The notes under the pieces: generated by a model | Databases searched by the model: none | What the model was told of the DNA's origin: nothing | What the model saw: only the letters and a program-made list of their open reading frames with translations | Part shown: positions 8,619 through 29,705 of the stretch, in pieces | Position numbering within the stretch: the stretch's first letter is position 1 | Layout: every line of letters starts with the position of its first letter | Sequence record: NC_027364.1 | Length of the DNA stretch: 64,000 nt | Reading direction: 5' to 3' (one strand) | Position numbers and translations under genes: made by a program

Positions 8619-11600
8619 TTAATCCTTCGTTACGCTAACGATTATCTGTGTATCCCCGTAGTCCTGCCATACTTCCACGCCATCGGTCGCCCTGGTTAGT
8701 CGTGCTGTCATCTGCTTAATGGTCTTAGGCTTTAGTGGAACCTGTTGCAGTACTGTACGCATAGCATCATTGACGTTATCATGTACGCCTGCAATAGTAC
8801 CTAGAACGCTGTATACTGTATAGAACATATGTATGTACTCCTGATATAGTTAAGGCCGCTACAAGGCGGCCTATGATGTTTGGTGATGTGTAACGCTTAC
8901 AGTCCTAAGATAGTGCGTGCTTCGTTACGTTCCGTACACAGCTGCATGATGTGAGCAAGTAAGTCCTTGCTAATGTATCCGTTGTCCATAGCTTCACGGA
9001 TAGATACATCATAAGCACCGAACCCCGTGCGAACGATACGCACATCATTCAGGTTAGTATTATAGATACCGCCGAGATCAACGGCTTCGAATACTACATC
9101 AACAGAATATTCATTGTTGCCATCGTGGAAGTTTTCCAGTGCAATAGTATTGGATACCGCCCAACGTTTGCAGTTTCCAATGATGCGGCACTGTTCCGGT
9201 TGGATAGTGCCATTACTTACAGCGTACTCCAGTGCATCTTTACCGAAAGTCCGAGCCAGTACTAAAACGTCAGCGAAGGAATTGATTGAGAAGGTCATGA
9301 TAAAACTCCTTAATTTAGGAGGGAGAACCATTTCCCCCTCTCTATGTAAAACATTATACTTGATTCTAAGTACTATGCAAGTACTTTTTACATTTTAATT
9401 CCTGGATTCAGGTAACGGTGAGATCCATATTCTGGATAGGTTTCGTTCCAGTACTGTAAATCGATAGTACCTTTCGCGTTAATCTTGTCTACCAGCTTAT
9501 TCATCTTAGCGTATACTACGTCAGCATCGATGCGTTTAAAGCCAGTAGCTTTAGTGAAGTAGTAGTGATTTGCTTCACTATCATTAAGGATATACCGAGC
9601 ACCGTTTGCAGTCTGTGCGATAATGATTGAGTATTCTACTTCCCGATCCAGACCGTCGATGAATACAGATGAAACATTGGTACGGATGAAAGCTTTAACG
9701 ATAGCGATTGAAGTACTCATTTTGAATCTCCTAACTTTGTGGGCCGTCGCACCATTGCCGCCCTACGAGATACATTATTGCAGTACTGATATACTTTGTC
9801 AATACTTTTTTATTAATAGTTTTAGTTCCACCAGCAGATAGTTACTCACCGTTATTAACTATATATTTTGGATACACTTATGCACCCTGTGGGCTGATTT
9901 GTTTCTATGCGTATATAATAGCAAAGGGACTGACCGGAGTCAATCCCTTTTTTATTCTTTTTTGTTAGATGATTCTCCAATCATCAACGATCATGGTAAG
10001 ATACCGAACCAGTGATTCGAGTGATTCGTGTTCTCGATAGTCTGCCGCACCGCCAGCGGTACAAGTACAGCCGATTAAGCCGTTTTGCAATTCCTTAATC
10101 TGTACATCGATAAGGTTGGCTTTAGCTTCTTTCAGTACTTCAACCAGGGCGAGAGCGATAGACATAATGTTTTACTCCAAACTATTGGCGGGAGAACTAT
10201 TCCCCCGCTCTATGTAAAACATTATACATTACTGGTTAGTACTGTCAAATAGTTTTTATGAAATATCTTCGATGTAGTCGGCCCATTTCATTTTTTCAGT
10301 ACTGTCAATGGCTACCGGATTATTTGGATCAAACCATTCACCATTACCGCAATACATACCAACGGCTACGGTTTTATAGCCATCCTGGGCCGTACACCAC
10401 GACATTGCACGATAGATATGGCCTTTAACTGGTTGCAGTACTGGTAACGTTTTATGGTCTTCTACGTAGGCCATAGCTTGAGGATTTACCCGATATTGTG
10501 TGAATTGTTCCATTATGTTTCCCCTTGTAGTTAGTAAAGTTATTACATCAGTACTATCAAGCTATGTCAATAGTACTGAAATAAAACTTTTAGATTAGAT
10601 TATTGAGGCCGTCAATGGTAGACTCACTTTCTTCTTTCTCCCATTGTCGGTAGTACTTCCATGCTTCATGATAGGTGGCGATTAGTTCATCTTTTTGATC
10701 CTGGTTACATGCCAGTACTGAATCACGGTGAGCGGTGTTATAGATAGAATCGAATGATTTCTTCTCTTCTGCCAGGTTAGCTACTTCCCGCATCAGTTCA
10801 TCAAAGTTAGCCATTTTATTACTCCTTTTAGTGGGGGAGGATATCTCCCCCTATGCAAAACATTATACTTTGTTTTAGTTATTATGCAAGTACTTTTTTC
10901 ATATAAACATTAAATTCTACACCGCCGTAACCTTCCACGATGATATGTTTTGCGTTATCACGTTTGCACATAGTGAAACCATCGTTTACGTGTTTTGCAT
11001 TTTCCAGGGCGACATCACCGATAGCGGCACATACAGCACTAATAACGATATTCCGCAAAGTACTGGTATCATTAGCGGTCATAGTAGTTTGCATGATTAC
11101 GTTGTCGTATACGTGTGCATTGATAGTGATTTCGATAGTGTTCATGGTGTATCTCCTGGACTGGCGGGAGAACTATTCCCCCGCTCTATGTAAAACATTA
11201 TACGTTAATCTAACTACAATGCAAGTACTTTTTAAATTTTATTTCCGATATAGTCTGGCCTGTTCTTTTCGGTCATACGCTTAAGCATTTTTTGCATATG
11301 GCTTATTGCTTGTAGTGTATCCTCTTCCAGGGATGAATCGAGATAATCAGGATCATTCTTCACCTTGCAATGATTATGATAGCGTAGTACTGCCAGTACT
11401 TTTTTAACTTCTTCAACTGTCATAATAAGTACTCCACTTCGTTAGCTTTCAGGTTAGTATCAATCATCAATGGTTTTTTGTAGTTCACAAAACGATTAGT
11501 TTTTTCGATAGCGAATCCCATATAATCCAGCTTACTAACAGTACATTCATTCTTAAAAACTTCTTTCGCTGCATCGATGGCTGATTGCATGGATAACCGA

Positions 11601-14600
11601 CCATCTAAATTAATGTTTCCAAATGATCCACCAGCAGAAGTAGGATTACCGTTCATATCTTTAATGATCATAGTAGCGGAGTAGCTGGACATAATTTTGT
11701 TTCCTTTTAGTATCGGGGAGAACTATTCTCCCCTTGATGTAAACTATTATACAGTACTAATATACTTTGTCAATACTTAATTACGTTTAAAATGATATGT
11801 GCCTTTATCATCCTGTACGCCCCATACTGATTTACCATCAACACCAGTGAAGCCGGATTGTAATTCAATATGGAAACCATTATTATCAACTACAAAAACT
11901 TTTTTATTTTCATCCCGATAACATTGATATTCTGAATCAACATTAAAGGCCGCATCATTCAGAAGATTGGAAGCGTAAATGCAAGTCATTGTAGTCATGA
12001 TTTTATTCCTTATTGCCAGGGAGAACCGTTTCCCCCTCTCGATATAAAACATTATACTTGATTCTAAGTACAATGCAAGTACTTTTTTAAAATAGTTTTC
12101 AGTACTGAATACTTATATAATAGATACACTTCCGCACCCTATGGGTCAGTGAGTTATCTCTCAATGAATATATAATAGCAAAGGGACTGACCGGAGTCAA
12201 TCCCTTTTTTAATCTTTTTTATCGTGTTATAGTTACGGCTTTTACATCACGCTTTTTATAGTACTGATTCCAGATATTGCGGGTTAAACCGTAATCAAGT
12301 ACTTTAATAAGGCCGTTGCGATCCTGGCCGATATTCTGTTTTCTGATATCTCTTATCGTTAGTGTTGACAGTGTATCATCAACGTGTTGTAGTGCATCAG
12401 CAAAGCGGTGCTGGCGTTCAATAGCATTACGTTTAATATTGTACTTTAATTCGTTGCACGCGTTAACGTGCTTCACACTGCCTTTACTTGCAGTACTCAA
12501 CCGATCCATAACAATAAACATATTATCAGGATCGCTTAAATGCATATGCACTTTAGCGAAGAACTGTTTCAACTGAGGGCGGTCATAGTCTAAAAAATTC
12601 CATACCCTACATTCTGTTTCATTTTGTTCTACACCCGCATCACAATTCGCGACCTTGATCACTAACCGATCATTTAAAGCGAAAACTATACGGGAAGAAC
12701 CCGCACCGATGATCTCCAGACCAGCTAACCGACAAGCTGAAAGGATCTCTTTGTTGGTTTCCATTGCTGACAGGGTACGGATGAATTTAGTATAATTACG
12801 CATTGCATGTTCTCCTTGAGTTAATGAAACTATCTTACAGTACTTTACTATCAATGGCAACTACTTTTTTTACACTAACCGCGTGAATCACTTCCTTAGT
12901 GTTTTTAGTACTGAATACTTTCGCCGTGCCTTGTTCTACTGCAATACGATAACGACCGTTAACATCAACCATATTAATAAAGTCCGGTGTACTAAACCGA
13001 GTAGTTTTACATTTCAGTACTGTTAACAGTTCCACCAGCGATGTGGTTTCTTTGATACGTTTTTCTAAAGTAATCATTTTGTTTTCCCCGTGTTGGTATG
13101 TACATATAGTACTAAAACATTTGAGTACTGTCAACGTGATATTAGTTTTATTTTCTTATTATATTGTTGATGTTCATAAAGGTTTATCTTTCCTGTGTTC
13201 TCTATTACTATTCTGTTGTTAGTGTCTACATCGATTACACGCAGTTTTCCGTTGCTTAACTTCCTTGGTAATAGGTTACCATTAATAAACTCATTAGCAA
13301 GCTGTACGGCCTTTGTGATGATTCTCTGAGGTGCTTTATAGTGTACCCGCAAGATATTATCTTTAGATAGTTGTACCTTAATCATTTTAGTTTATCCTAT
13401 AAAAAAGGCGGGAACTGATCCCGCCGTGTTGTTAGTACTGCAAGTTATTAGATAACCTGTCGGCGTTTACTATATACTGTTACACGATTACCCTTACGGT
13501 CGTGTCGGATCTCTTTCTGGTTGCGTACCAGTTCACTTGGACGCTTCAGGTTTGCCAGGTGATCCGCGTGAGTCCAAGCGGTATGGTTTGTCTGTACTTT
13601 GATATCAGAATCAGCGATAAACTCATCTTGTGCATCAAGTATTGACGCCAGTAAATCCGCTCGTTTTAGTTCTGCTGCTGTTAGTACTGGCTCCGGTGAA
13701 TTCACAATATCAGAGATCTCTTTGAACTGTACGGCCCAGCGTTGACCTTTCGGTGCATCTTTGCCCATGTCTTTAAATGTTTCGCCTTCCTCGCGTGCAA
13801 CAATACGGGCAGCTTCACGGGTAGCGTAGAATTTAGTAATCATGGTATACATCCTATTAGTTGAGTTAGTACTACAAGTTAGAGTCTATTATAAAGTACT
13901 ATCTGGGCAATGTCAAATAGTACTTTAAATGGATTCTATTACATGTCTTTCTTACGTTTTACATCGTGGTAGCGAACTGTTATTTCTTTGTTGATCTCTT
14001 CCTCGATGCGGTGAATAACTGTTTCTTTCGGGTTGAAACCTATAACGGTTTCTTTAATGATCTCCAAGCCCGTGTATTCTCCTTGTGTACCGTAACCGTA
14101 AGTAAAGGTTTCATGTCCCAGGTCTTCCCAGCGGTCGCCAATTAACGCGGACACGTAGCAAGAGTGGTAAGTGTTACCGTTCCGATCAGTCCAGCGATTA
14201 ACTTTAATGTCAAAGGAGGTTACAATTTTCAGTTCTACTTTCTGGGTAAGGATCATAGCCATTTTTATTTCTCTCTCTCTTTGTTAGGAGGGGAACCGTT
14301 TCCCCTCGCTTGATGTAAACTATTATACAGTACTAAGATACTTTGTCAATACTTATTTTTTGGAAAGTTTACGCATTAATTCTACGCTTTCTTGTGAACG
14401 TTTTGCTACCTGGCAATCTGTATGGGTAGTAAACATTTTTGTATAGTCTGACGGTTTGCCACCGAACCGAGCGGCACGCTCACGGGCACTTGGAACTAAT
14501 ACGATTTCTTTCTTACAGATAGTGCACTTAGCCATTTTTATTTCTCTCTCTTTGTTAGGAGGGGAACCATTCCCCCCTTGATGTAAACTATTATACAGTA

Positions 14601-17600
14601 CTAAGATACTTTGTCAATACTTAATTATTGTAAATGCAGTGAATAGTGATAAAGTTTTTACGACCGTAAACCTGCAAATCAATATCAATGTAGTGCTTAT
14701 CAAGTACATCCTCGACGCTTAACGCGGTGTCGTGAATATCTTCGTAGAATTGAGGATCTACAATCTTGCTTAAGTCATCCGGCGTTAACTTATCGTTAAG
14801 CCATTGAACCGCCTGGATATCTGCTTCACGTTTCCAGTCTTCCAGGTTAGTAGTCAGTACTTGCTCGATTTCGTTAGCTGTCAGTAGAATCCGCATTTTT
14901 ATGTTTCCTTATCAGTAGTTGATGTAAGTATTATACTCGTTTACTTTCTATTGTCAATCTTTTTTTATCAGGGGAGTTTTTCGTATGTCTTACTCCTGGA
15001 CTACTTAACGGGGTTACTTGTTTTGTTCCCCGTCCTGATGTAAAACATTATACTTGATTCTAAGTACAATGCAAGTACTTTTTAAAAATAGTTTTACTTA
15101 CTCATATTAACAGGCTTGAACGGTGGCAATGTAAGATCATGCGGGGTTAAACTATCATGCTTTGCCCACATACCGGAATCCCTACGGAATAATACCTTAT
15201 TGTTTTTTATACGATAAAAGTTACCATTATCAGTGTTTTTGTACCATATCATTTTCATTTACTCCTGGTTATGTCGTTATTAAACATTATACGGGGTTAT
15301 AGATAGTTTTCAAGTATATTTCAGTACTAGCCACCAGCATATAATAGATACATTTATGCACCCTATGGGCTGATTTTTTTCTATGCGTATATAATAGCAA
15401 AGGGACTGACCGGAGTCAATCCCTTTTTTAATTCTTTTTAAACTTCTTTCGGGTTGCGATATGTGATAGCGTTCGGGTACATTTGTTTAATGTTATTCCA
15501 TGCCTGGTTAACATTGTAACCACTTGAGCGAATCAGTTGGTTACTACCGACACCTTGAAACACTACTTCGAATAAGAATTCTTTCATGCTTTCACCTCGC
15601 TATCTGCTTTACCTTTACGCCAGGACATTACTAATTGTTCGCGTTGCCATAAATCGAGTGATACAAAAAGTTTTGCGGTATCACTTTTAGGATACTCGCC
15701 AGTAGTACCTAACCGATAAAACAGATCTTTCAGTACTGATAATTCTACTTGAATCATTTTATTACTCCTGATTGATTTAATACTTCTACTATTGCATGAA
15801 TGATCATAAGTACAGCTAAAACAATAATCATCGGATTCATTTGCATAAGCTGTACTCCTTCTATTAATCTTTCAGCCAATGATCTTGAATGAATTTTTCA
15901 CAGAATCCCTGTTTCATGGATTCCAACAGGCGTTCGCGGTGAGCGTTTGCGAATTGCTCAGTACTATGCGTTACGCCAGGCTGATAACGTGATACCCCAT
16001 CCGGTCCGATGTATTGTACATCCCACGGTTTTTCGTTAGTATCAGACCATTTACGAACGATTAGTTGACCTTGCATTTTTCTTTCCTCTCAGTGGGGAGA
16101 ATCATTTCTCCCCTTCATGTAACTTATTATACAGTACTAGATTATCTTGTCAATAGTTTTTATTCACCTTGTTTGAATTTAGTTTTCTCCATTGATTCCA
16201 TGATTGCAACCAATACGCCGTGGATCTCGCTTAACGCGGAATCACTGAAAGCATTAATGAATAGTCGATCATTCTCGCGAATATTTTTAATGTACTTTTC
16301 AGCAGTAGTTGCGAATTCATTCAACGGTAGATCAAATGCTTTATCCCATGATGGATGGCGTAATTGTAACAGTACTGGATTATCACGATCACCAGGGGAA
16401 AACGTACCAGTGATGAAACATACGCCCGGAATACTTTCGAACTGGCAACGGACTTCCTTTGTGATAGTAGTATGAATGTACATTTATTGTTATCCTCTAT
16501 TAAATTAATATTACAGTTTATGAATCAATTCTTTATCTAAGCGATAGCGTACATTATTAATAGTAACGGCATTGTTTTTAATGCTACGCTGTACAGGTCC
16601 ACCAGCAATAACAAATGTTGCTTTATTACCCCGAACAATGATAGCACTTCCAGGATTACCGAAATCATCTTGTACTAAAATACTTGATAAGTTTTCCATT
16701 TTCATTTCCTCTTAGTAGGGGAAGATGTTTCCCCTTGATGTAAGTACTATAACACTACTGGATAGTACTGTCAATACTTTTTATCTCATAGATCTATGCC
16801 AACAATTACGCGGGGGACGTTTAAAAGTACTATCATGATCCTCCTGGCAAGTTATGCAGTACTTACATCCCTTAACGGCCTGGCGTCGTTTCTCAGGGAT
16901 TATATCGCCGCAGTCGAGGCAATGTATCAGTGATTCTATTTGTGCGTTAATTTGCTTTCTAGCGTGGTTAACGGCGGCCTGAATCACTGCGTTAATCTCG
17001 TCTTGTTCGGCCCCATCTTTCGCGAATCCTACAGCCATTATTTTAACCTCATTATAAAAATACTATAGTACTGTAATGCGACAATAATATTACTTGTTCT
17101 TACTTTTTCCAATCCACATGATACCACATATTCATCCCCATATGTGCGGAACGATACACCATGAAAATTTTTATACACTTGCACTACTAATCATAACCTT
17201 TCGTCTAACCAACTGCATAGAATTATACTACTTTACGCAAATTGATCAAGTATTGATCAGATCATTTTTTGATCAATATTATACAGTTACATTTGTGCAC
17301 CCTATGGGTTAGTGACGTTCTCGTCTTGATGTAAGTATTATGCCAGTACTTGATGATATTGTCAATAGTTTATTTTAATTTTTTTCTGTCATTGATTAAT
17401 GCTTTCAGTACTATACTAATGATTTGCAATGATTCATCAATGACTATAAAATTATTCTCTTTCATTAGATGATAGTTACCATTGATTGTATATTCTAAGG
17501 AGTACTGTTTACGTTTAATTTTTGATAATGTTTCTATTTGTTTTTGTACTGATTTCATGCTAATCATTGTTAAACGTCCTGTAACGCATTCTAACGAGAT

Positions 17601-20600
17601 AAACGGTTTAGTACTGGCATTGTATAGGGTAATGAATTAAAGCCCACCAGCGTTAACCAGTGGGCTATAATCTTACATCTTGCGGATAATCTTAACAGTA
17701 TCTTTCACCGATTTACCGTCTTGCTGGCATTGCTCGATCATTGCGTATTGTTCTGCTGTAAGATCCTCGCCAGTTTTTGCCAGTACTGCGTCGATGAATG
17801 AATCCAGTGCGATCATTTTGTTTCTCTCTTAGGTTAAGTTAACTACTGTTTATAAAACTTATTATACAGTACTATCAAACGTTGTCAATATCTTTAATAG
17901 TACTGGTAATATATTTTAGCGGTAATCGTCGTATGCTTTATTCACCTGGCGAATGTAACTTTCAAAGGCTTCGTCTACCGTTTCATACTCCCGAACATAA
18001 TCACCATAGGAAACTACATACATACCTTTTTGATCTTCAAACGACATGATGATAGAATCCAGGCCGATGATTTCAGTTTTTGCGATGATAGCCATTTTTA
18101 ATTCCTTAGTAGTGTAGTTGATAAAAGTTATTATGCCAGTACTATCAATCAGTGTCAATAGTACTGTGATAATATTTTTTAGTTAATAATAGTCAGTGTA
18201 AAATTGTAATCCCCTGCCTGGTATAGTACTTTATCGCCGAACGTTCCAACACGTTTCATATTGCAATAGATACCCATAACACTTTTTACATCTTTGATAT
18301 TCCGAACGCCAGTAATATCCTTGTTTAAATGATCGTGATCAGAAAATAAAACTTGTTTTGCATTTTTCAGTACAGTGCAGATATTAGCCATTTTGTTTTC
18401 TCTCTGTTAGTGGGGAGAATCATTTCTCCCCTTCATGTAACTTATTATACAGTACTATAATCTATTGTCAAACTATTTTTTTATATTATTCGAAATCTTC
18501 TGGACCGGACTGATAATCATCTTCACCGTATGCACTTTCTAACTTCTCGCCAGTGTGATCATCAGTTAGTGAATCATCCTCATAATTCACGTCTACGCCT
18601 ACAATGTAAAACTGGCTATCGTCTGGATCATTGAAATTAATTTTCTGAATGTTTACAATAACTGTATTGATGCCCAGGACACAGCCATCAGCCGTTACAA
18701 AGTACTGATAGTTTTCACAACCGCCTGAATTGAAACCGTAATTGATTTCGGCCCGACCATCATTTAAACGCAGTGCCTGGGCGATGATTTCGTTTTCAAA
18801 GTTAGATTGAGCAATTGAGATAGTCATGATTCGTTTCCTTATTACTAGGGGAAACCGTTTCCCCTTTCGATGTAAAACATTATACGCTTATTGAGATAGT
18901 TTGCAAGTACTTTTTATCAAATACTTTAAAATAGTTTTCAGTACTCAAACATTATACAATAGATACACTCCTGCACCCTGTGGGCTAGTGAGCTATCTCT
19001 CAATGATTATATAATAACAAAATGGCTGACCGAAGTCAACCACTTTTTTCATTTATTTTTTAGCTTTAAGTACTGCGGCCTTTCGTGTCATGCCTTGCTT
19101 GATGTATTCCTGTACTTTCGCTTTACGTGCTTTAGCTTTATCTGCTTTAGTTTTAGGAGTACTGTAAACTATACCGTTAGGATTCATTTAAATCACCATA
19201 AAGAATAGATAGGTTACTAACAACGCCGCGATCAATGCACCGACCAGGGCCGAACTGTAATAAGCTAAGGATCTCATTTTTTAGCCTGAAAATAATGTTT
19301 AATTTGTGCGGCGGTCAGTGCACAATTACGCAGGAAGTTTTCTGTATAACTGCGGCGAGTATTAAAAGAGAATTGACCTTTACCGTTACCGATAGTTACA
19401 TCCATCCGAGCGTTGTATTGTTTCATTTTGTATCTCCTGTTATCGGGGAGAATCATTTCTCCCCTTCATGTAAAACATTATACAGTACTAAAAACTAATT
19501 GCAAGTATTATTTTAAACTTTGTGCGACTAATTTCGCACGGTCAATCATATACTGCCATTTTTGGATCTCTTCTGGCAGAAAACGATATTCACCAATAAC
19601 AATAGTGATACACTTTTCAGCTTGGTCAATGTATGTAGTATCAATCTCGACTTGAACGGGTACACGTTCGCCGTATTCAGTCCCTGGGATAATGCAATCA
19701 TTATCATAAGTTACAGTAGTAGTAGTGTCTTTGATTAAAATTGTTTCCATTATACTTTCCTCGTTAGGTGTAAGGGGAACGTTTTCCCCTTCATGTAAAA
19801 CATTATACAGTACTGAAAACTAATTGCAAGTACTTTCCGAAAGTAAATGCTCATACGCTGCATTAACTACATTTTCAATAACCGACTGTACAGAAAGATC
19901 CCCCACGTCCTGGCTATAGTAGAAATTGCTTACAGTGGTGTCATCGTATGCAAATACTTTACCAGGTACTGCATCAATCACATACATATTAACCTTTAAG
20001 ATGTCGATCTTATCCTGTACAGTAAGCATATTAATTAACCTTTTAAGTACTGGCTTAAGTAGTCTTTTTGATCTTCGGTGATTGCAGTCATCTTCCCTAG
20101 TACTGGATTGATGATATAATCCCCTGTAACGTCCTGTAACGCATTCTCAGGCGGTTTAACGGCTGGGGTAGCCATAGCCATTGCCTGGACTTGTTCGACG
20201 CTGTAACGCTCATAAAGGCGGCATTCTTCCGGTGTTAACATAGCATCAGTACGCTTCATCGGTTTAATGATGCTTTCGATCTCATTCAGTACTTGATTAA
20301 CGTTCATGGTATAATCCCCAATATAAGCGGCCTAAATCGACCGCTAACGATGTTTTGATTAATAGGTGTAAGGTTGACGCTCAAACAATGATTGTACGCT
20401 GTACGCCCCGCTAATGGGCTTCGCTGGCAAATCAATTTTATATTGTTCACGCTTAAAGATAATAAAACGGCAATTGTTTTTAACATCAAAATTGATTGAA
20501 CGTTCCAGGAGTTTTCCATCGTGCACAAATACAAGATAACCGCTTGGTACTTGTTTTGTAGAACTGGTTGCAACCATAGACCGACGAACATGTGTACCTG

Positions 20601-23600
20601 CATCGATTAAAGTACTGATATTTTTCATTTTACTATCCTCTTAAGTTGATTTAATTTCTTTCCCCTATGCAGACACTGTATCAAAGTATCTGCATAAAGT
20701 AAAGCTAATTAAAGATCTTTTTTACGTTTTACATCCTGTACAGTACAATGCAACGGGATAGACAAATCATTACACAAACGAGTAAGGGAGGTTTCAACAG
20801 TATCAAGCCCGTCTACTGATTCCTTTAAGAGATCAAACGCCGTTTGTTGATATGCATCTTCATAGCCATAAGTAAATGATTCAACCGCCAGATCATTCAA
20901 ACCGTTATCCAGTTCAACGCTTACATGACAAGAATGATAAGTATTGCCATATGAATCAGTCCAACGTTTACCGTCAACATTGATTGCATGGATTGCAGCC
21001 AGGGAAACGGTATTGATGATAGTTTTAGCCATTTTAGTATTCCTTAAATTAATATGTGTCGTCTTGATAAAATCTATTATGCCAGTACTATCAAACTATG
21101 TCAATAGTACTGTGATAATATTTTTACTTACTTTCTTTCGCTGCTTTATATGTTGCCACTGCCATAACCACATCAGCACGAACAAAGTTTTTAACCGTGT
21201 CACTGTAATAATTGATCGCATCATCTATATCTGCGAACGTCCGATACATACCGCACCAAGATACTTTATAACCTTCTTTCACTTCTGCCAGTTTAACGAT
21301 AGTCTTGTTAACTTTGATTTTAGTAATGATAGCCATTTTAGTTTCCTCATTATCAGGGAGAACCATTTCTCCCCTTGATGTAATGTATTATACTTTATTC
21401 GATTTACTTTGCAAGTACTTTTTTTAATTTAATTCATCCAGGCAAAGGATACGCTCAACGCCCAAATCAGTTAAACTAATCGACGGCACTTGATAGGTTT
21501 CAATGTATGCTACACTTGCCCACTGACCGAACTCATTAACGGCCCAGGTATTCATTGCATTTTGCAATTCCGCACCTGCCTTGTTAGTAATGACTGCAAC
21601 TACTTGTTCGTTGCCAGTAGTACCAGATACGCGAGTAATGATAATAGCCATTGTTTTGATTCCTTTGATTTGGAAGGAGAACCGTTTCCCCCTCTCGATG
21701 TAAAACATTATACGCTAATCTCTTAATCGTGCAAGTACTTTTTATTACTTTTTGCAAAATACTTTAAACGCTCTCAATCGCATTCTAACGACCTTAACGC
21801 CACCAGCTAGGGCGATGTATCAGATAATCAGTTTAATGCGTTAGAATCGATTCTAGGCGGTGCTGGTGGACTGGAATACTACAGACACAAAAAAGCCCAC
21901 TGTTTAAGGTGGGCTAGTGATTCAGTACTTTAATTGTTATGCTTCAACTTTGCGATGAGCTTCGATCCATTCCTCGCGAGTCATACCGCTTTCTTTGATA
22001 GCGTCCAGTACTACCGCAATGCAGTTACCGCGTACAGGAATCATATGTTCTTCCCCGTTATCAAGTACTACAGTAACACGTTCTTGAATCCATTTTTTAG
22101 GTTTAGATTCTGGCTTATCTTCACCATACTTAACCGCCAGGGCTTTATGTGCCATTTCTACAACTACTTCCAGATCCAATCCAGCCACCGCCGCCTGGAT
22201 ACTTTCGATTGTTGCTTGCAGTTCGGCTTCACGGGCTTTTTTCTGTTCTTCCAGTTCTGCTACCTTTTTGGCTTGCAGTTCTTTAGCTTCACTGTACGCA
22301 ATGTTAAAATTGTTGCGTACTGCTTTCATGGTATCGTTATCCAGGTCAGCCAACAATTCAGCAGCAATAACAGTATCGTTTGAAATCAGTGCTTTCAGGA
22401 ATGATTTTACATTAGCCATTTTATAAATCCTCAATTAAAGTTTAGTTTACGTTTATTAGTGTATCAAAGTTTTATCGACGTGTCCAGTTTTTCGTTCGAC
22501 TTACTGGCGGTCTACTTAGTGCTCCCCGTCTTGATGTAATACATTCTACGCCTTTTTGTGGTAATGTCAACTACTATTTTAAAACTATTTTTAAAGTATG
22601 CAGTACTACGATAATACAAAAACAAAAAAGCCCACTGTTTAAGGTGGGCTAGTGATTCAGTACTATATTATAAACAGTTAATTACTCCGGTGTGCGTTAC
22701 TTTCTCAGTATCCATAACCGTGACCGATCCACGCTTAGTACTTACATCGTAATAAATTGTCGTGCTACCTTTTTCGTCTTCTTCATGGAACGGGCCGCTT
22801 TTAAATGCTTCTGGCTGGATCTCTAAATCCTTTAAAACAATCTCGCCAGTACTTTCATCTGTCATCGCAACAGTGCACTGAATGAATTTTTCACTACTTA
22901 CATCTAACGACGCATTAACAGCGAAAGAGGAAACAGATAAAGCCAGGGCGATGATTGCAATTTTCATTTGATTATCCTTAGTTACCAGGGGGAACCGCTC
23001 CCCCGTGCGATGTAAAATATTGTACAGTACTAAAAACTAATTGCAAGTACTTTATGATTTTTTATAAAACATTTCGGCAGTAATATTTTTACCCGTTGGT
23101 TGTACTTTATCCAGAATTTTTTGATGCCCTGGCCGTCCAAATGAATATGATCCGTAAACCGTAAACCAGTAGTTACCCTCAGTGTTTACATGTACAGCAC
23201 AATAGGGAACGCCCCGCGATTCATCACCAATAAAGTGTGATACCGTTCCCGTTACATTAGCAGACGTTGATTTGATTTGTTCAAGCATTTTCTTATTCCT
23301 TAGTTACCAGGGGGAACCGCTCCCCCTATGCAAAACATTATACGCGTTTAAAAACTAATAGCAAGTATTTTAATAAAAAGTATTTGAAAAATAATTGTTG
23401 ACAACTGCATCCAGTACTGGCATAATTACTACATCAAGACGAAACAGTCACTAACCCACCGGGTGCCGAGATCCGTCTATTAAATGATTCAGTACTTAAC
23501 AATAAAGGGGATCAATCGATCCCCTATGTATTACTTAGTAAGGTATAAACAGAAGTCACCTTTATTTGCTACGCCGCCAGTGTAACGCGATGAATAGTTA

Positions 23601-26600
23601 GAAACGTCCTGGACTTCTGCTATTACCAGTGTATCATCATTCAATTCGTCGCAGAAGCAAACGGCTGGATCTTTTACGCCGATCTTGTCGGCATGTTCCC
23701 GCATAGATTTAACCAGTGCTTCCAGTTGAGAAAGAGTAGTGATATTAGCCATTGTATTTTCCTCATTACCAGGGAGAACCATTTCTCCCCTCTATGTAAA
23801 CTATTATACAGTACTGAAAACTAATTGCAAGTACTTTTAATTAAATTCCATAAAATCATTCTCAACGTGCACAACAATTTGATTGTTTTTAAAGTCCGCA
23901 GCGAACTCGATGCAATCATAAACCGCTTTTTGTGTTACAATGCTATGAGTACCAATCGGATTAATAGGGGATTGAATTGTTTCAATCTCGTTCCCTTGCT
24001 CATTAACAATTAAAATATTAAACATCGCTGTTACTCCTGGGTAGTGTTAACTCGATATAAAGTATTATACGCCTTTATTGCTTAGTGTCCAGTACTTTTT
24101 AAAACATATTCATAAACACTACGCACATCATTGATCATCGCCTGGCGGTTAGCAGGTAACGCACCAGGATCGCCACTATCCCAGGCATTGATAAAACTCC
24201 CCAAATCATGAAAGATTTTATTCTGTAAGCCGATTAACTGCAATTCTTTTTCTTCAAGCTCTTTGATACGGTCAATTAAAAGACTCATTAGATAATCCTC
24301 AGTACTTAATTGTAAGATCCGCAACGGTTACAATAGTGCCCGTCTTCCTCGTCATCGTCAACGAATTGACCGACGAAATTATCTACTTTCTCTTTGAGAT
24401 TCTGATAATTGTTTTCAACTTCCTTTAGACGTTCCTGGTAGTATTCCAGGGCTTGCACATACGCCGCCTCAGCCGTTTTCGCTCTTAAGGCTAAATTCAT
24501 GCCACGCGTTTCATCGTACATCCAAAAGCCATCGGTGCACTCACTGATTGACAATGATTTGGTTAACACTTTATAGTCAATTACTTTGCTCATTAGATAA
24601 TCCTCAGTAAAGGCGGGAACCACACCCGCCATTGATTCAGTACTGAATGTTACATTCCAACCATTGCAGCACGGATCGCCGTAGTGCTATACTTGAATCC
24701 GTCCGGTGTTGTAGTAGTACCGTTGGCTTTTAATCTGCGGTACATACATTGGGCCGCAATATCTTTAGTTTTACATTGTGCGATGCAACTTTGAGCAAGC
24801 CGATATAATGACTCACCGTTATTAATCCACAATGAAACATTCCAATGAGTTTTGTTTTTGTGCCCGTTGTAAGTTTTAGTAGTAGCCATTTTTAAATCCT
24901 CGTTTAATTGAGCGGGAGAACCATTCCCCCGCCTCGATATAAAGTATTATACGCTTTTAAACTTAGTTTGCAAGTACTTTTTAAATTAATATGCGATTGA
25001 TTCTACTACGTCATCAATAACATTGAATTGATACTCGTTACCCTCGATCAGTGCCGTGATGTTCTCAGTAGTGAATTGATCCTCATATGCATTCTCTAAA
25101 TCACGGTACAACTTGCGGGACAATTCACGAATAGTATCAGTGAGTAGTTCCTCAAGCTCATTAACTAACGTTTCTTGTTTTGCGGTTAAATCAGTGTAAG
25201 CCGATTCAATGTACCCGCTTACAGTATTCTCATGCGAGTAGTGGGAGTGCGAACGCTTTACACTCATCGCCAAATCATCTTCATTCAGCAAGTGACGGAT
25301 TGAGCGATACTTAGTTAATGCTCTTACCTTGCGTAAAAACTTCACTGCGTCAACGTGGTCAGTACTGATTGATGCACCGTCACCCTGGGACCAAAAACCA
25401 CTGAATTGTATTTCAGCTTCATTAATGCCATATTCCGGTAGTACTGTTTCTTTATAGTATTCAATTTCACTTTCAGAAAAATAATTGTCGTTTGAGTTTT
25501 TTTCACGTTCCCGAACCAGTTCGATAGCTGACGTTTGTTGTTCTGCGTTCAATTCAGAAAAATCCATAACGAAAGTAGTAGTAGTGATAGTTTTCATTTT
25601 GTAACCCTCATTCAGTAGTTGATGTAAGTATTATACGCTTTTAAAAACATTTGTCAAACTATTTTATCAGGGGAGTTTTTCGTGTGCCTTACTCCTGGGC
25701 TACTTAACGGGAAGTTACTTATTTCGTTCCCCGTCCTGATGTAAAACATTATACGCCTTTAAACATAGTTTGCAAGTACTTTTTAAAAATAGTTTTCAGT
25801 ACTGAATATTAAAAAAGTATTGACAGCATTATCAAGTACTGGCATAATATACCACATGACAACAGCTAACCCACCGGGTGCACAATTGTAACTATACTAA
25901 ACTAATTTTTCTATAGATACACTCCCGCACCCTATGGGCTACGGCTTATCTGCCAATGAATACATTATGCCAGTACTGACAAAATAAGTCAATACCGGCA
26001 ATTGTAAAGATTTGTAAACTACTTATACTGCAATCGCGTCCAGGCTATAATAATAATAAGTGCCGTATTGGTGTACTTTATTACCTTTTATTTCAGTACT
26101 GAATGAATCCGAACGATTTGCATATGATGTTAATTTAAAGTACTTTGATTTGCTGATACGTTGCCATACACCACAGATCCGCTGTAAGTAAGTAGTTTTA
26201 TTCGTGGTAGTATCTTTTACGGTTTTAACTTCAGTCATATACATATTAGTCATTTTTATTACTCCAGGTTATAGGCGGGAAGAGTTCCCGCTCTCGATGT
26301 AAAACATTATACGCCTTTAAACATAGTTTGCAAGTACTTTTTATTCAAGTACTGCAATCTTTTTAGTACGGTACACGGTCACGCGGTTGCCCTTTCGGTC
26401 GAGCTTTATTTCTACCACTCGACGCGATACACTATCGGGACTTTTTAAGGCCGCTAACCAGTACTGTAATGATCTGGCTGTACTACGCTTTACAATGGCC
26501 CAACGTTTACCACGTTCCGATTGTACGCCCATATCTTTAAACGTTGCCCCGTCCTGGCGTGCGGCGATCCGAGCTTGTTCACGCGTCGCAAAATACTTAA

Positions 26601-28647: not shown

Positions 28648-29705
28648 TTTACTTCCAGACTTCTGGAGGGCTAGACATATCTACGTCCAAAATCCACCCA
28701 GGGTAACTACGCCCAAAATCCGTCAGTACTATACCATAGATCTATCTTTTGAAAGGGAGTATTCAGTACTGCCACAATAGCCCTCACTATGTTACCCTAG
28801 GAGGATGAAGACTATCATGTAGTACTGAATACTGTTAGAGGGAATCCACCAGCTTGTGCTGGTGGCATAATGCTTTAGATTAAAATCAGTACTGACACCA
28901 TTCTGTTAATATCAGTACTGTTATTACGATTTTCATATGAGGTTCAAAAAGATGTACCACCACAGGAGGAACTATCTTTTCTGTACTGTCTCACGACAGG
29001 AGGTAGAGTAAATGAATTGTTCGCAGCAACTCATCACCCTATGTAGAACATTATACAGTACTGAATCATAATGTCAATAGCTTTCTTTCATTATTCAGTA
29101 CTGATATTCTTGAGAACTACCCGACTACAAACATCATTATATCCCACAAATCATAAACGTCCCAACGTAAATTTCAACTTTCGAAGATCCAACTTTTATT
29201 TCATAGGTACTCCAAAATTTTTAGGATCGAGATTTAGGATGGAGTACTAACCAACTTTTTGCTGGAGCCTCAAGGGGTAATGGAATTTTACCCCGAAGGG
29301 TAAAGGGGTAATTGAAATTAAGGTGAAAGTAATAATTCAGTACTAATCATTGCGTGATTACTTTTGATTACATTTGATGTAATTTGAAAAATGGAAAAGG
29401 AGCTTGGAAACTACAAAGTACGGCAGACTTCCTCTGCCTACTTAGTGGCATATCAGTACTGAATCCTTCCCGTGCATTCTTGAGCATTCTTGTCTATACT
29501 AATCAGTACTGAATCATATATAATCATTCTGTGATTCTACGGTGCTCATATAAATGTTTATATATGATTACTTATGACTACCTATGATTACGGGGTTTAG
29601 CCTGGGGAGAATCCTAGTGATCGCATTTGTCCAGGCTGAATTTTAACAATTCGCCTGTACATAAAGGTTGTTCACTAGGAGCTTCCCCTGTCTACTTGTG
29701 TTTAA

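Follow-up and report, generated by a model that had tools for sequence, protein, structure and literature searches.

The stretch of DNA analyzed here, referred to as the window, comprises 64,000 nucleotides of record NC_027364.1, the genome of the Escherichia jumbo phage PBECO4 (Asteriusvirus, 348 kb); window position 14000 corresponds to record position 138000. Between approximately 8 and 29 kb, the window contains a series of small minus-strand genes, almost every one of which has its own sigma70-type promoter. A first-pass annotation of this DNA had described three copies of a structured leader RNA in this region, each starting right at a promoter. The three copies and their promoter-adjacent starts were confirmed to the nucleotide, on the minus strand, at 15039-14967 (copy A), 22535-22474 (copy B) and 25740-25666 (copy C). 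A degenerate 33-nt core pattern matched exactly three times in the window, compared with no match in 100 shuffles, and each copy was found to start 3-8 nt past a strong sigma70-type promoter, where the transcription starts were deduced from the promoter sequences. The evidence presented below makes it very probable that these copies are members of an uncatalogued and widespread structured RNA module, located at the 5' end of sigma70-polymerase immediate-early transcripts of virulent Enterobacterales phages. With equally high confidence, we identify its archetype as nt 536-594 of phage T7, in the A1 transcript just ahead of the A2 promoter.

The three copies and their setting in PBECO4

Copies A and C belong to the same structural type. 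Copy A (14967-15039; minimum free energy of -20.2) follows promoter P1 (TTGCAT-N16-TATAAT, 15047-15074), from which transcription would start at A15041. Its helices are P1 (15039-15034/14972-14967), P2 (15033-15028/15013-15008) and P3 (14996-14992/14977-14973), and the segment GUAGUC (15004-14999) is predicted to form a pseudoknot with the P3 loop sequence GAC-A-UAC (14989-14983), followed by an A-rich loop 3 (14982-14978). A second promoter, P2, with the consensus sequence TTGACA-N16-TATAAT, is present at 14929-14957 and precedes gp246 (14621-14896, ATG at 14896), which encodes 91 amino acids (phrog_14947, function unassigned). Copy C (25666-25740) follows promoter P1 (TTGCAA-N16-TATAAT, 25748-25775) and contains helices P1 (25740-25735/25671-25666), P2 (25734-25727/25713-25707) and P3 (25695-25691/25676-25672). 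Here GUAGCC (25703-25698) would pair with GGC of the loop segment 25688-25682, and loop 3 occupies 25681-25677. A consensus promoter P2 (TTGACA-N16-TATAAT, 25629-25657) and gp274 (24986-25597, ATG at 25597; 203 amino acids, phrog_5162, function unassigned) follow. In both copies the helix AUCAGG/CCUGAU lies outside helix P2, and RNAfold predicts a three-way junction (z = -3.4 for copy A and -2.1 for copy C).

Copy B (22474-22535) is of a type that contains no P2 helix. It follows promoter P1 (TTGACA-N16-TAGAAT, 22543-22570) and comprises an outer helix, within 22535-22527/22480-22474, helix P3 (22507-22503/22488-22484) and loop 3 (22493-22489). The candidate pseudoknot is formed between GUAGAC (22515-22510) and the loop sequence GUC in segment 22500-22494, which gives 3 bp with a partly complementary extension. 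A weak promoter-like site (TTGATA-N17-TAAACT, 9/12, 22444-22467) separates copy B from gp267 (21937-22419, ATG at 22419), which encodes 160 amino acids (phrog_27871). Homologues of gp267 were also found after the element in Salmonella phage 7t3, Klebsiella phage fENko-Kae01 and Erwinia phage Hallingskeid. The earlier reading of gp267 as an H-NS-like gene was not upheld by sequence searches: a search of its product against Pfam gave no H-NS hit at E-values up to 0.01 and a sub-threshold DUF3846 match alone, and nothing meaningful was found among PDB sequences. That reading had also taken copy B alone as the 5' UTR of a gene and had assigned no open reading frame to the other two copies. Copy B does head a gene, and copies A and C are 5' leaders as well, with a second promoter and next a gene downstream of each.

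The P3 stem reads GGAGT/ACTCC in copies A and C and CCAGT/ACTGG in copy B, which is the double compensatory change that had been described. The outer stem that had been proposed for all three copies was also present, as AUCAGG/CCUGAU in copies A and C and as GACG/CGUC plus AUC/GAU in copy B. Two further observations concern these copies. The loop of the P2 helix (15026-15014 and 25726-25714) contains the sequence AAGUAAC, which is conserved across members of the A/C type, and its AAGUA is the complement of a UACUU in the start region of the P2 promoter that follows, a candidate pairing in which the A/C-type members show no variation. Additionally, identical hairpins resembling intrinsic terminators (AGCCCACC...GGGCT followed by a T run) were found on the minus strand at 22650-22629 and 21915-21894, flanking the promoter, element and gp267 of copy B and making this unit a self-contained cassette.

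The region that holds the copies is terminal in a relative whose genome ends have been mapped. In phage vB_Ec-M-J, the stretch homologous to window ~8-29 kb is a 21.5 kb direct terminal repeat (positions 1-21525). Its genes have gaps between them and are oriented inward from the left end; the genes past the repeat are tightly packed. All three copies read inward within this repeat, with distances to the left end of approximately 3.7, 6.7 and 14.2 kb. Other relatives with mapped termini, including fENko-Kae01, also carry their copies within the terminal repeat close to the left end, and the T7 copy lies 0.5 kb from the T7 left end. Based on this comparison, the deposited PBECO4 coordinates are probably permuted relative to the physical ends; the offset from copy C places the left end near window position 29,400. 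By comparison with T7, DNA of the terminal repeat would be expected to enter the cell and to be transcribed first, which for the jumbo phages we infer.

The promoters that drive the three copies belong to a family, AAAAAGTACTTGCA-N16-TATAATGTTTTACATC, with at least 12 occurrences in the window. At least nine sister promoters are followed by a simple hairpin at +3 to +25, then a Shine-Dalgarno sequence and then an ATG. Minus-strand early promoters of the form AAAAAGTACTTGCA-N16-TATAATGTTT-TACATC were observed at window positions 9348, 12046, 14585, 21702, 26301, 26984, 27301 and 27761, each with a short 5' hairpin rich in G, then a Shine-Dalgarno sequence and then an ATG. Several of these transcripts start with ATCGAGAGGGGGA, which is almost the same as the sequence first transcribed from T7 A1.

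Homologues in T7 and other phages and the predicted fold

An exact-pattern scan of viral contigs revealed the core of the element in T7-like contigs of approximately 40 kb, including T7 itself (39,937 bp). The T7 A1 transcript begins with ATCGAGAGGGA at nt 498, and the element at nt 536-594 lies between A1 and the -35 hexamer of A2, with its end being that hexamer. A covariance model was trained on 20 T7-like sequences alone and used to scan the whole window with filters off. The three PBECO4 copies were recovered at E-values of 3.3e-5 (copy A), 3.9e-5 (copy B) and 9.5e-4 (copy C), and the next match had an E-value of 0.48. As this model recovered just the three PBECO4 sites, the homology is statistical and not merely visual. 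In the resulting alignment, the P2 helix of PBECO4 was matched with the upstream hairpin of the T7 type. The model found no degenerate second copy between T7 A2 and A3.

By blastn, the T7-type element was identified as one copy in each of 487 phage records, whose hosts include Escherichia, Klebsiella, Salmonella, Yersinia, Citrobacter, Serratia, Aeromonas, Cronobacter, Pectobacterium and Morganella, among others. The A/C type was found in 45 records, including members of Stephanstirmvirinae (muut, EmilieFrey, outra) and Vequintavirinae (A73, A7_1), and the B type in 51 records, including Salmonella phage 7t3, Klebsiella phage fENko-Kae01, Erwinia phage Hallingskeid and LTH01. A blastn search of 5,426 complete genomes of E. 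coli gave no match to the motif. When 185,579 genomes, each representing a bacterial or archaeal species, were scanned with the pattern, 111 matches were obtained, all of them chance matches without the hairpin save one, and this sole genuine match was a mis-binned T7-like fragment. A host origin of the motif was rejected on these searches, and the element belongs to virulent phages and not to hosts or prophages. Its absence from bacterial genomes, together with a host range across Enterobacterales and Aeromonas, suggests a conserved host partner. In the unverified record of phage CMSTMSU, an A-type copy at ~345-360 was observed to be short of part of the P3 5' arm, with TCCAGGAGT cut to TCGAGT and a 4-bp stem remaining; this may be a natural degenerate copy or an assembly error.

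The central feature of the fold is the 5-bp hairpin P3 with a 14-nt loop, and counts for P3 and the pseudoknot were taken from 40 distinct sequences. Three pairs of P3 vary and are always paired (CG 31 and GC 9; CG 29, GC 9 and UA 2; UA 24, AU 15 and UG 1). Of the remaining pairs, one is an invariant G-C, the closing pair is U-A in 32/40 sequences, and the outer pair occurs as GC 15, GU 11, AU 2 and UA 1. Within the loop, G-N'-C-(A)-UAC is complementary to the upstream segment GUAG-N-C. The N/N' pair is A-U in 29 sequences, U-A in six and C-G in four, with one exception, and it is G-C in a further T7-like metagenomic contig (L179). The U-A form was seen both in a T7-like lineage (contig L003) and in the jumbo A type, which indicates that the change arose more than once. 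The other five pairs of this stem are invariant and complementary. We therefore assign moderate confidence to the interpretation of the invariant core as an H-type pseudoknot, as N/N' supports it and is the only pair of the stem that varies. The loops would be 1-2 nt (loop 1), AA (loop 2) and the A-rich GAAAA of 5 nt (loop 3). The TAAGTAG segment, which had been taken as unpaired, is probably not so, since its GUAG and the two bases after it form a complement of the hairpin loop, and this pairing covaries.

A further helix, a/a', was found in T7-like phages, where the loop of an upstream 4-bp hairpin pairs with sequence located 1-2 nt past P3, an arrangement that by covariation constitutes a predicted second pseudoknot. 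Five of its six pairs covary, and its forms include GUCAA/UUGAC, GAUUAG/CUAAUC, GUCGGU/ACCGAC, GUCAUC/GAUGAC and UCAAC/GUUGA. The 3' strand of a/a' in T7 corresponds in the RNA to the A2 -35 hexamer; K1F, L003 and the contig L006 have no -35 hexamer at a', which still covaries with a. Copies A and C have the equivalent helix in their three-way junction, a type that shows little variation since its members are closely related. In B-type copies, the equivalent closes an internal loop and is remodelled but retained in relatives, as GACG/CGUC, GACGG/CCGUC, CAGG-CG/CG-CCUG and AUCAA/UUGAU. For the T7-type structure as a whole, 91.6% of cells were paired compared with 79.7% in shuffles, and 10 pairs change on both sides. 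None of 500 shuffles reached the observed measures, and sliding the partners reduced pairing to 19-39%. The alignment derived from the covariance model leans towards the model structure. A swapped-partner duplex-energy test for a/a' was too noisy, as the G-rich flanks pair anywhere (cognate mean of -7.4 versus -5.2 kcal/mol), and the column-based test was used instead. G-U pairs were present on the sense strand only (GU in 11/37 at one pair) and the element is always in sense orientation to its promoter, which together indicate that the RNA strand is what folds. Nucleotides outside the helices are also nearly invariant across phages as different as Autographiviridae and jumbo myoviruses.

To our searches, the family is new. 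With Rfam 15, the window gave no match at the gathering threshold, and the T7, L025 and muut loci gave no match at E-values up to 5; around copy A, there was a chance match to the PutA thermometer alone (14.5 bits against a threshold of 51, E = 5.9). A search of the open literature by sequence and topic, with older subscription literature on T7 lying outside it, revealed no paper describing the motif, and the T7 segment appears there as template sequence only. The first-pass annotation had proposed an undescribed multi-stem RNA with a covarying stem, to be sought in Rfam and in phage genomes. This proposal is borne out by homologues in hundreds of phages that keep the pairing, by compensatory changes in three helices and one tertiary pair, and by the lack of an Rfam match. 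The motif is new as a fold and as a family; structured early-leader phage RNA as a kind has precedents in put and nut.

A close precedent in position and in its logic as a module is put of phage HK022, which is V-shaped, comprises two long stem-loops of ~70 nt with a triplex in stem I, and exerts its effect as an RNA on the polymerase making it, with no phage protein involved (PMC9378689). Like putL and putR, the element is a short RNA (60-75 nt) located just past early host-polymerase promoters. Compared with the published description of put, it differs in having an H-type pseudoknot and helices of 4-6 bp and in occurring in virulent phages only. A scan of the HK022 genome with the motif model gave a best E-value of 1, and homology to put was rejected on this result. 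Suppression of pausing and termination by put is factor-independent and operates in cis via the beta-prime zinc-binding domain.

We also compared the element with several other known RNAs. It resembles the boxB and boxA of rrn operons and lambda-type phages in that the leader of tandem-promoter units contains a hairpin whose loop is large and A-rich, but the hairpin loop is engaged in the predicted pseudoknot, boxA is not adjacent, and none is present in the PBECO4 and myovirus loci. A candidate likeness to a segment of the rrnB leader was not recovered by the motif model. Mimicry of 16S rRNA was rejected, as the best match in rrnB (16S nt 850-921, 9.6 bits, E = 0.42) was within the null range; 16S 856-885 showed 23/30 identities, with an ungapped score of 12.5 against a shuffled-query mean of 10.0 and maximum of 13. 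The dimensions of the core are those of classical H-type pseudoknots (the T4 gene 32 leader, preQ1-I, SAM-II and frameshift elements), with 6 bp in stem 1, 5-6 bp in stem 2, 1-2 nt in loop 1 and a loop 3 that is A-rich and positioned for the minor groove of stem 1. In contrast to these families, the phage element has the extra helix a/a' and an optional P2 helix, shows no sequence or covariance-model similarity to them, and has neither an open reading frame for frameshifting nor an expression platform. The likeness to CsrA-binding CsrB repeats that had been drawn from CAGGACG/CAGGAG did not hold. Copies A and C contain two AGGA motifs, as in CsrB/CsrC sponges, but their GGA is buried in helices P1 and P3 rather than placed in hairpin loops, there is no repeat array, and the motif is absent in copy B and unconserved in the T7-type members; the CsrA-sponge reading was thus rejected.

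Possible functions of the element

Across the phages, every copy begins 3-40 nt past a sigma70-type promoter, and a second promoter follows the element at a variable distance of 5-39 nt; in L025, there is no second promoter and boxA follows the element directly. No terminator was found after the element in any of ~45 distinct examples. This lack of a terminator and the varying distance to the second promoter argue for a leader rather than a stand-alone RNA. Within each tandem pair, the element is carried solely by RNA initiated at the upstream promoter, and this RNA continues into the sequence beyond. The mobile unit appears as promoter plus element: the same cassette lies ahead of the gp246 homologue in muut, and in A73 and EmilieFrey it lies ahead of complete, different promoter-hairpin-gene units. 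The three downstream genes in PBECO4 belong to unrelated PHROGs as well. This independence of the cassette from the following gene speaks against a downstream protein that regulates its own expression. Of the 32 T7-like loci checked (L002-L049; 30 of them Autographiviridae-sized contigs), 20 have a perfect rrn-type boxA ([TC]GCTCTTTAACAA) at 22-380 nt past the element; it was absent in all jumbo and 140-kb myovirus loci checked.

The best explanation as a whole, with a probability of roughly 0.35, is that the element is an early-leader module acting in cis on the host transcription machinery. The RNA would fold while emerging from the polymerase and would engage, in cis, a component of the host that is conserved, for which the transcribing polymerase or its elongation or termination partners are the most likely candidates. 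The first early complexes might thereby be shielded from pausing or Rho-type premature termination before the incoming DNA is translated. We hold this mechanism, including the partner and the effect, with low confidence. A cis role is favored by the facts that the element is never a stand-alone gene, is always promoter-proximal and co-occurs with boxA in one large lineage, and that the host polymerase is the only obvious common denominator across these phage families. In T7, transcription by the E. coli polymerase from A1-A3 pulls the genome in.

Several points weigh against this explanation. The T7 A2 and A3 transcripts, the transcripts from the PBECO4 P2 promoters and approximately 40 other early promoters of the region lack the element, which is odd for a general antiterminator. 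The window contains seven boxA (GCTCTTTAACAA) matches with up to two mismatches compared with 8.35 expected, all on the plus strand and none near the copies. The copy B unit is bracketed by identical intrinsic terminators, and in T7 the early transcripts, A1 transcripts among them, are efficiently terminated at TE, a point against put-type suppression of intrinsic terminators; the fold is also unlike that of the published put RNA, with nothing found by the model in HK022. Moreover, T7 deletions that enter the element region (D111) are viable in the laboratory, and RNase III severs the T7 leader from the mRNA at R0.3.

This cleavage at R0.3 would suit a different role, in which the strong promoter mainly makes the pseudoknot RNA and the RNA survives as a stable 5' fragment that acts in trans as a decoy or sponge. 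The fragment would be released by RNase III in T7-like phages or by decay of the downstream mRNA, and it might titrate or inhibit a protein conserved among the hosts, for example Hfq, S1, an RNase, Rho or a defence nuclease that is RNA-guided or cleaves RNA. The promoter and element form a self-contained add-on ahead of complete promoter-leader-gene units, with only 1-3 copies per genome and no dependence on the following gene, and a compact pseudoknot would withstand exonucleases. The invariant nucleotides outside the helices across very different phages are also consistent with a decoy. We nevertheless regard this role as unlikely on balance, as the ~45 distinct examples show no terminator or defined 3' end and there is no repeat array of the CsrB or ToxI kind, with the GGA motifs being unconserved. 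The simple 5' hairpins of the PBECO4 region suggest another cis role, in which the element was elaborated from them as a 5'-end stabilizer or RNase E barrier for the downstream mRNA. The sister promoters have their hairpin at the same place, the PBECO4 element begins at approximately +3, a few nucleotides from the predicted 5' end as in ompA-type stabilizers, and the covariance model aligns the P2 helix with the T7-type upstream hairpin. However, the element is far more conserved and complex than a stabilizing hairpin would have to be, and a stabilizer leaves the nearly invariant loop and junction nucleotides from Autographiviridae to jumbo myoviruses unexplained. In T7-like phages, a different hairpin occupies the 5' end, with two promoters and the RNase III site lying before the genes, and the P2 transcripts manage without the element. 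This role seems rather doubtful, but both it and the decoy fragment are serious rivals of a module acting on the transcription machinery.

Three further possibilities are less likely in view of the points against each. Aptamers of classes such as preQ1-I and SAM-II typically adopt small pseudoknotted folds, and the closing helix, the A-rich loop 3 and the invariant junction nucleotides would fit a riboswitch-like sensor of a host metabolite or alarmone at infection. In no lineage, however, is the element followed by a terminator, an anti-terminator or a sequestered Shine-Dalgarno sequence, a promoter being found instead, and no Rfam riboswitch family matched even at E-values up to 10, which makes a sensor improbable. 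A signal in the DNA without a role for the RNA, as an UP element, spacer or protein site for the downstream tandem promoter, is suggested by the second promoter that follows the element (L025 excepted), the A-tract upstream of that promoter and the identity of T7 a' with the A2 -35 hexamer. We consider it highly improbable, as the spacing between the core and the following -35 ranges from 5 to 39 nt, L025 has no second promoter, compensatory changes preserve the pairing in three helices with strand-specific G-U pairs, and a/a' covaries in K1F, L003 and L006, where a' is no -35 hexamer. The compact nested-pseudoknot architecture in phage DNA recalls a self-cleaving ribozyme or a dedicated processing site, but no Rfam ribozyme family matched. 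To our knowledge, no self-cleavage has been reported in decades of in vitro transcription from T7 A1 templates with natural downstream sequence, and we assign this possibility the smallest chance of all. The functions listed initially (riboregulator, processing site, put-like antiterminator or sponge) were not narrowed decisively, and the likeness to put was unsupported by both the fold and the HK022 scan.

T7 is among the best-studied genomes and its A1 region is a standard transcription template, yet the A1-A2 stretch carries no annotated function in the examined records. This stretch encodes a compact RNA, with a predicted pseudoknotted fold, under strong structural selection, and the same RNA is common to T7, 350-kb jumbo phages and 140-kb myoviruses that have almost nothing else in common with T7. 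The element adds a family to RNA databases and suggests horizontal movement of promoter-plus-leader modules among coliphages. It also offers a testable handle on how virulent phages condition host transcription or RNA metabolism in the first minute of infection, and it may matter for synthetic constructs with natural T7 A1 downstream sequence. In its broadest form, the proposal is a new class of functional RNA that opens the first early transcript of T7 and many unrelated virulent enterobacterial phages. This double-pseudoknot module would be exchanged horizontally with its promoter and would bind a core host machine (the RNA polymerase elongation complex, Rho/Nus or some other RNA-binding protein that is conserved) and so safeguard the opening minutes of infection. 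We consider this a real possibility, at somewhat short of even odds.

Resemblance to the rrn leader and a second repeat family

The early control region of T7-like phages was observed to resemble an rrn operon leader in its layout of tandem promoters, leader, boxA and RNase III site. In K1F (positions 350-410) and L003, the start of the A1-type transcript resembles the E. coli rrnB P1 leader (GACACGG-AACAAC-GG ... GCC-GGGTCA), with a local alignment score of 25-27 against a null of 15.5 (standard deviation of 2.1).

A second repeat family, containing CCCAYAGGGTGCA-N2-A-N-TGTAWC, was also found in the window, with six copies compared with 0.55 expected by chance. Five copies lie on the minus strand at 9887, 12139, 15363, 17302 and 18978, and one lies on the plus strand at 25876-25892, under the control of a plus-strand promoter (25820-25848) that diverges from copy C. 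For three or four of the copies, the upstream promoter has its -35 (TTGACT) inside a 12-bp hairpin (AAAGGGATTGACTCCGGTCAGTCCCTTT), and no open reading frame follows. This second family may represent another small RNA or regulatory site.

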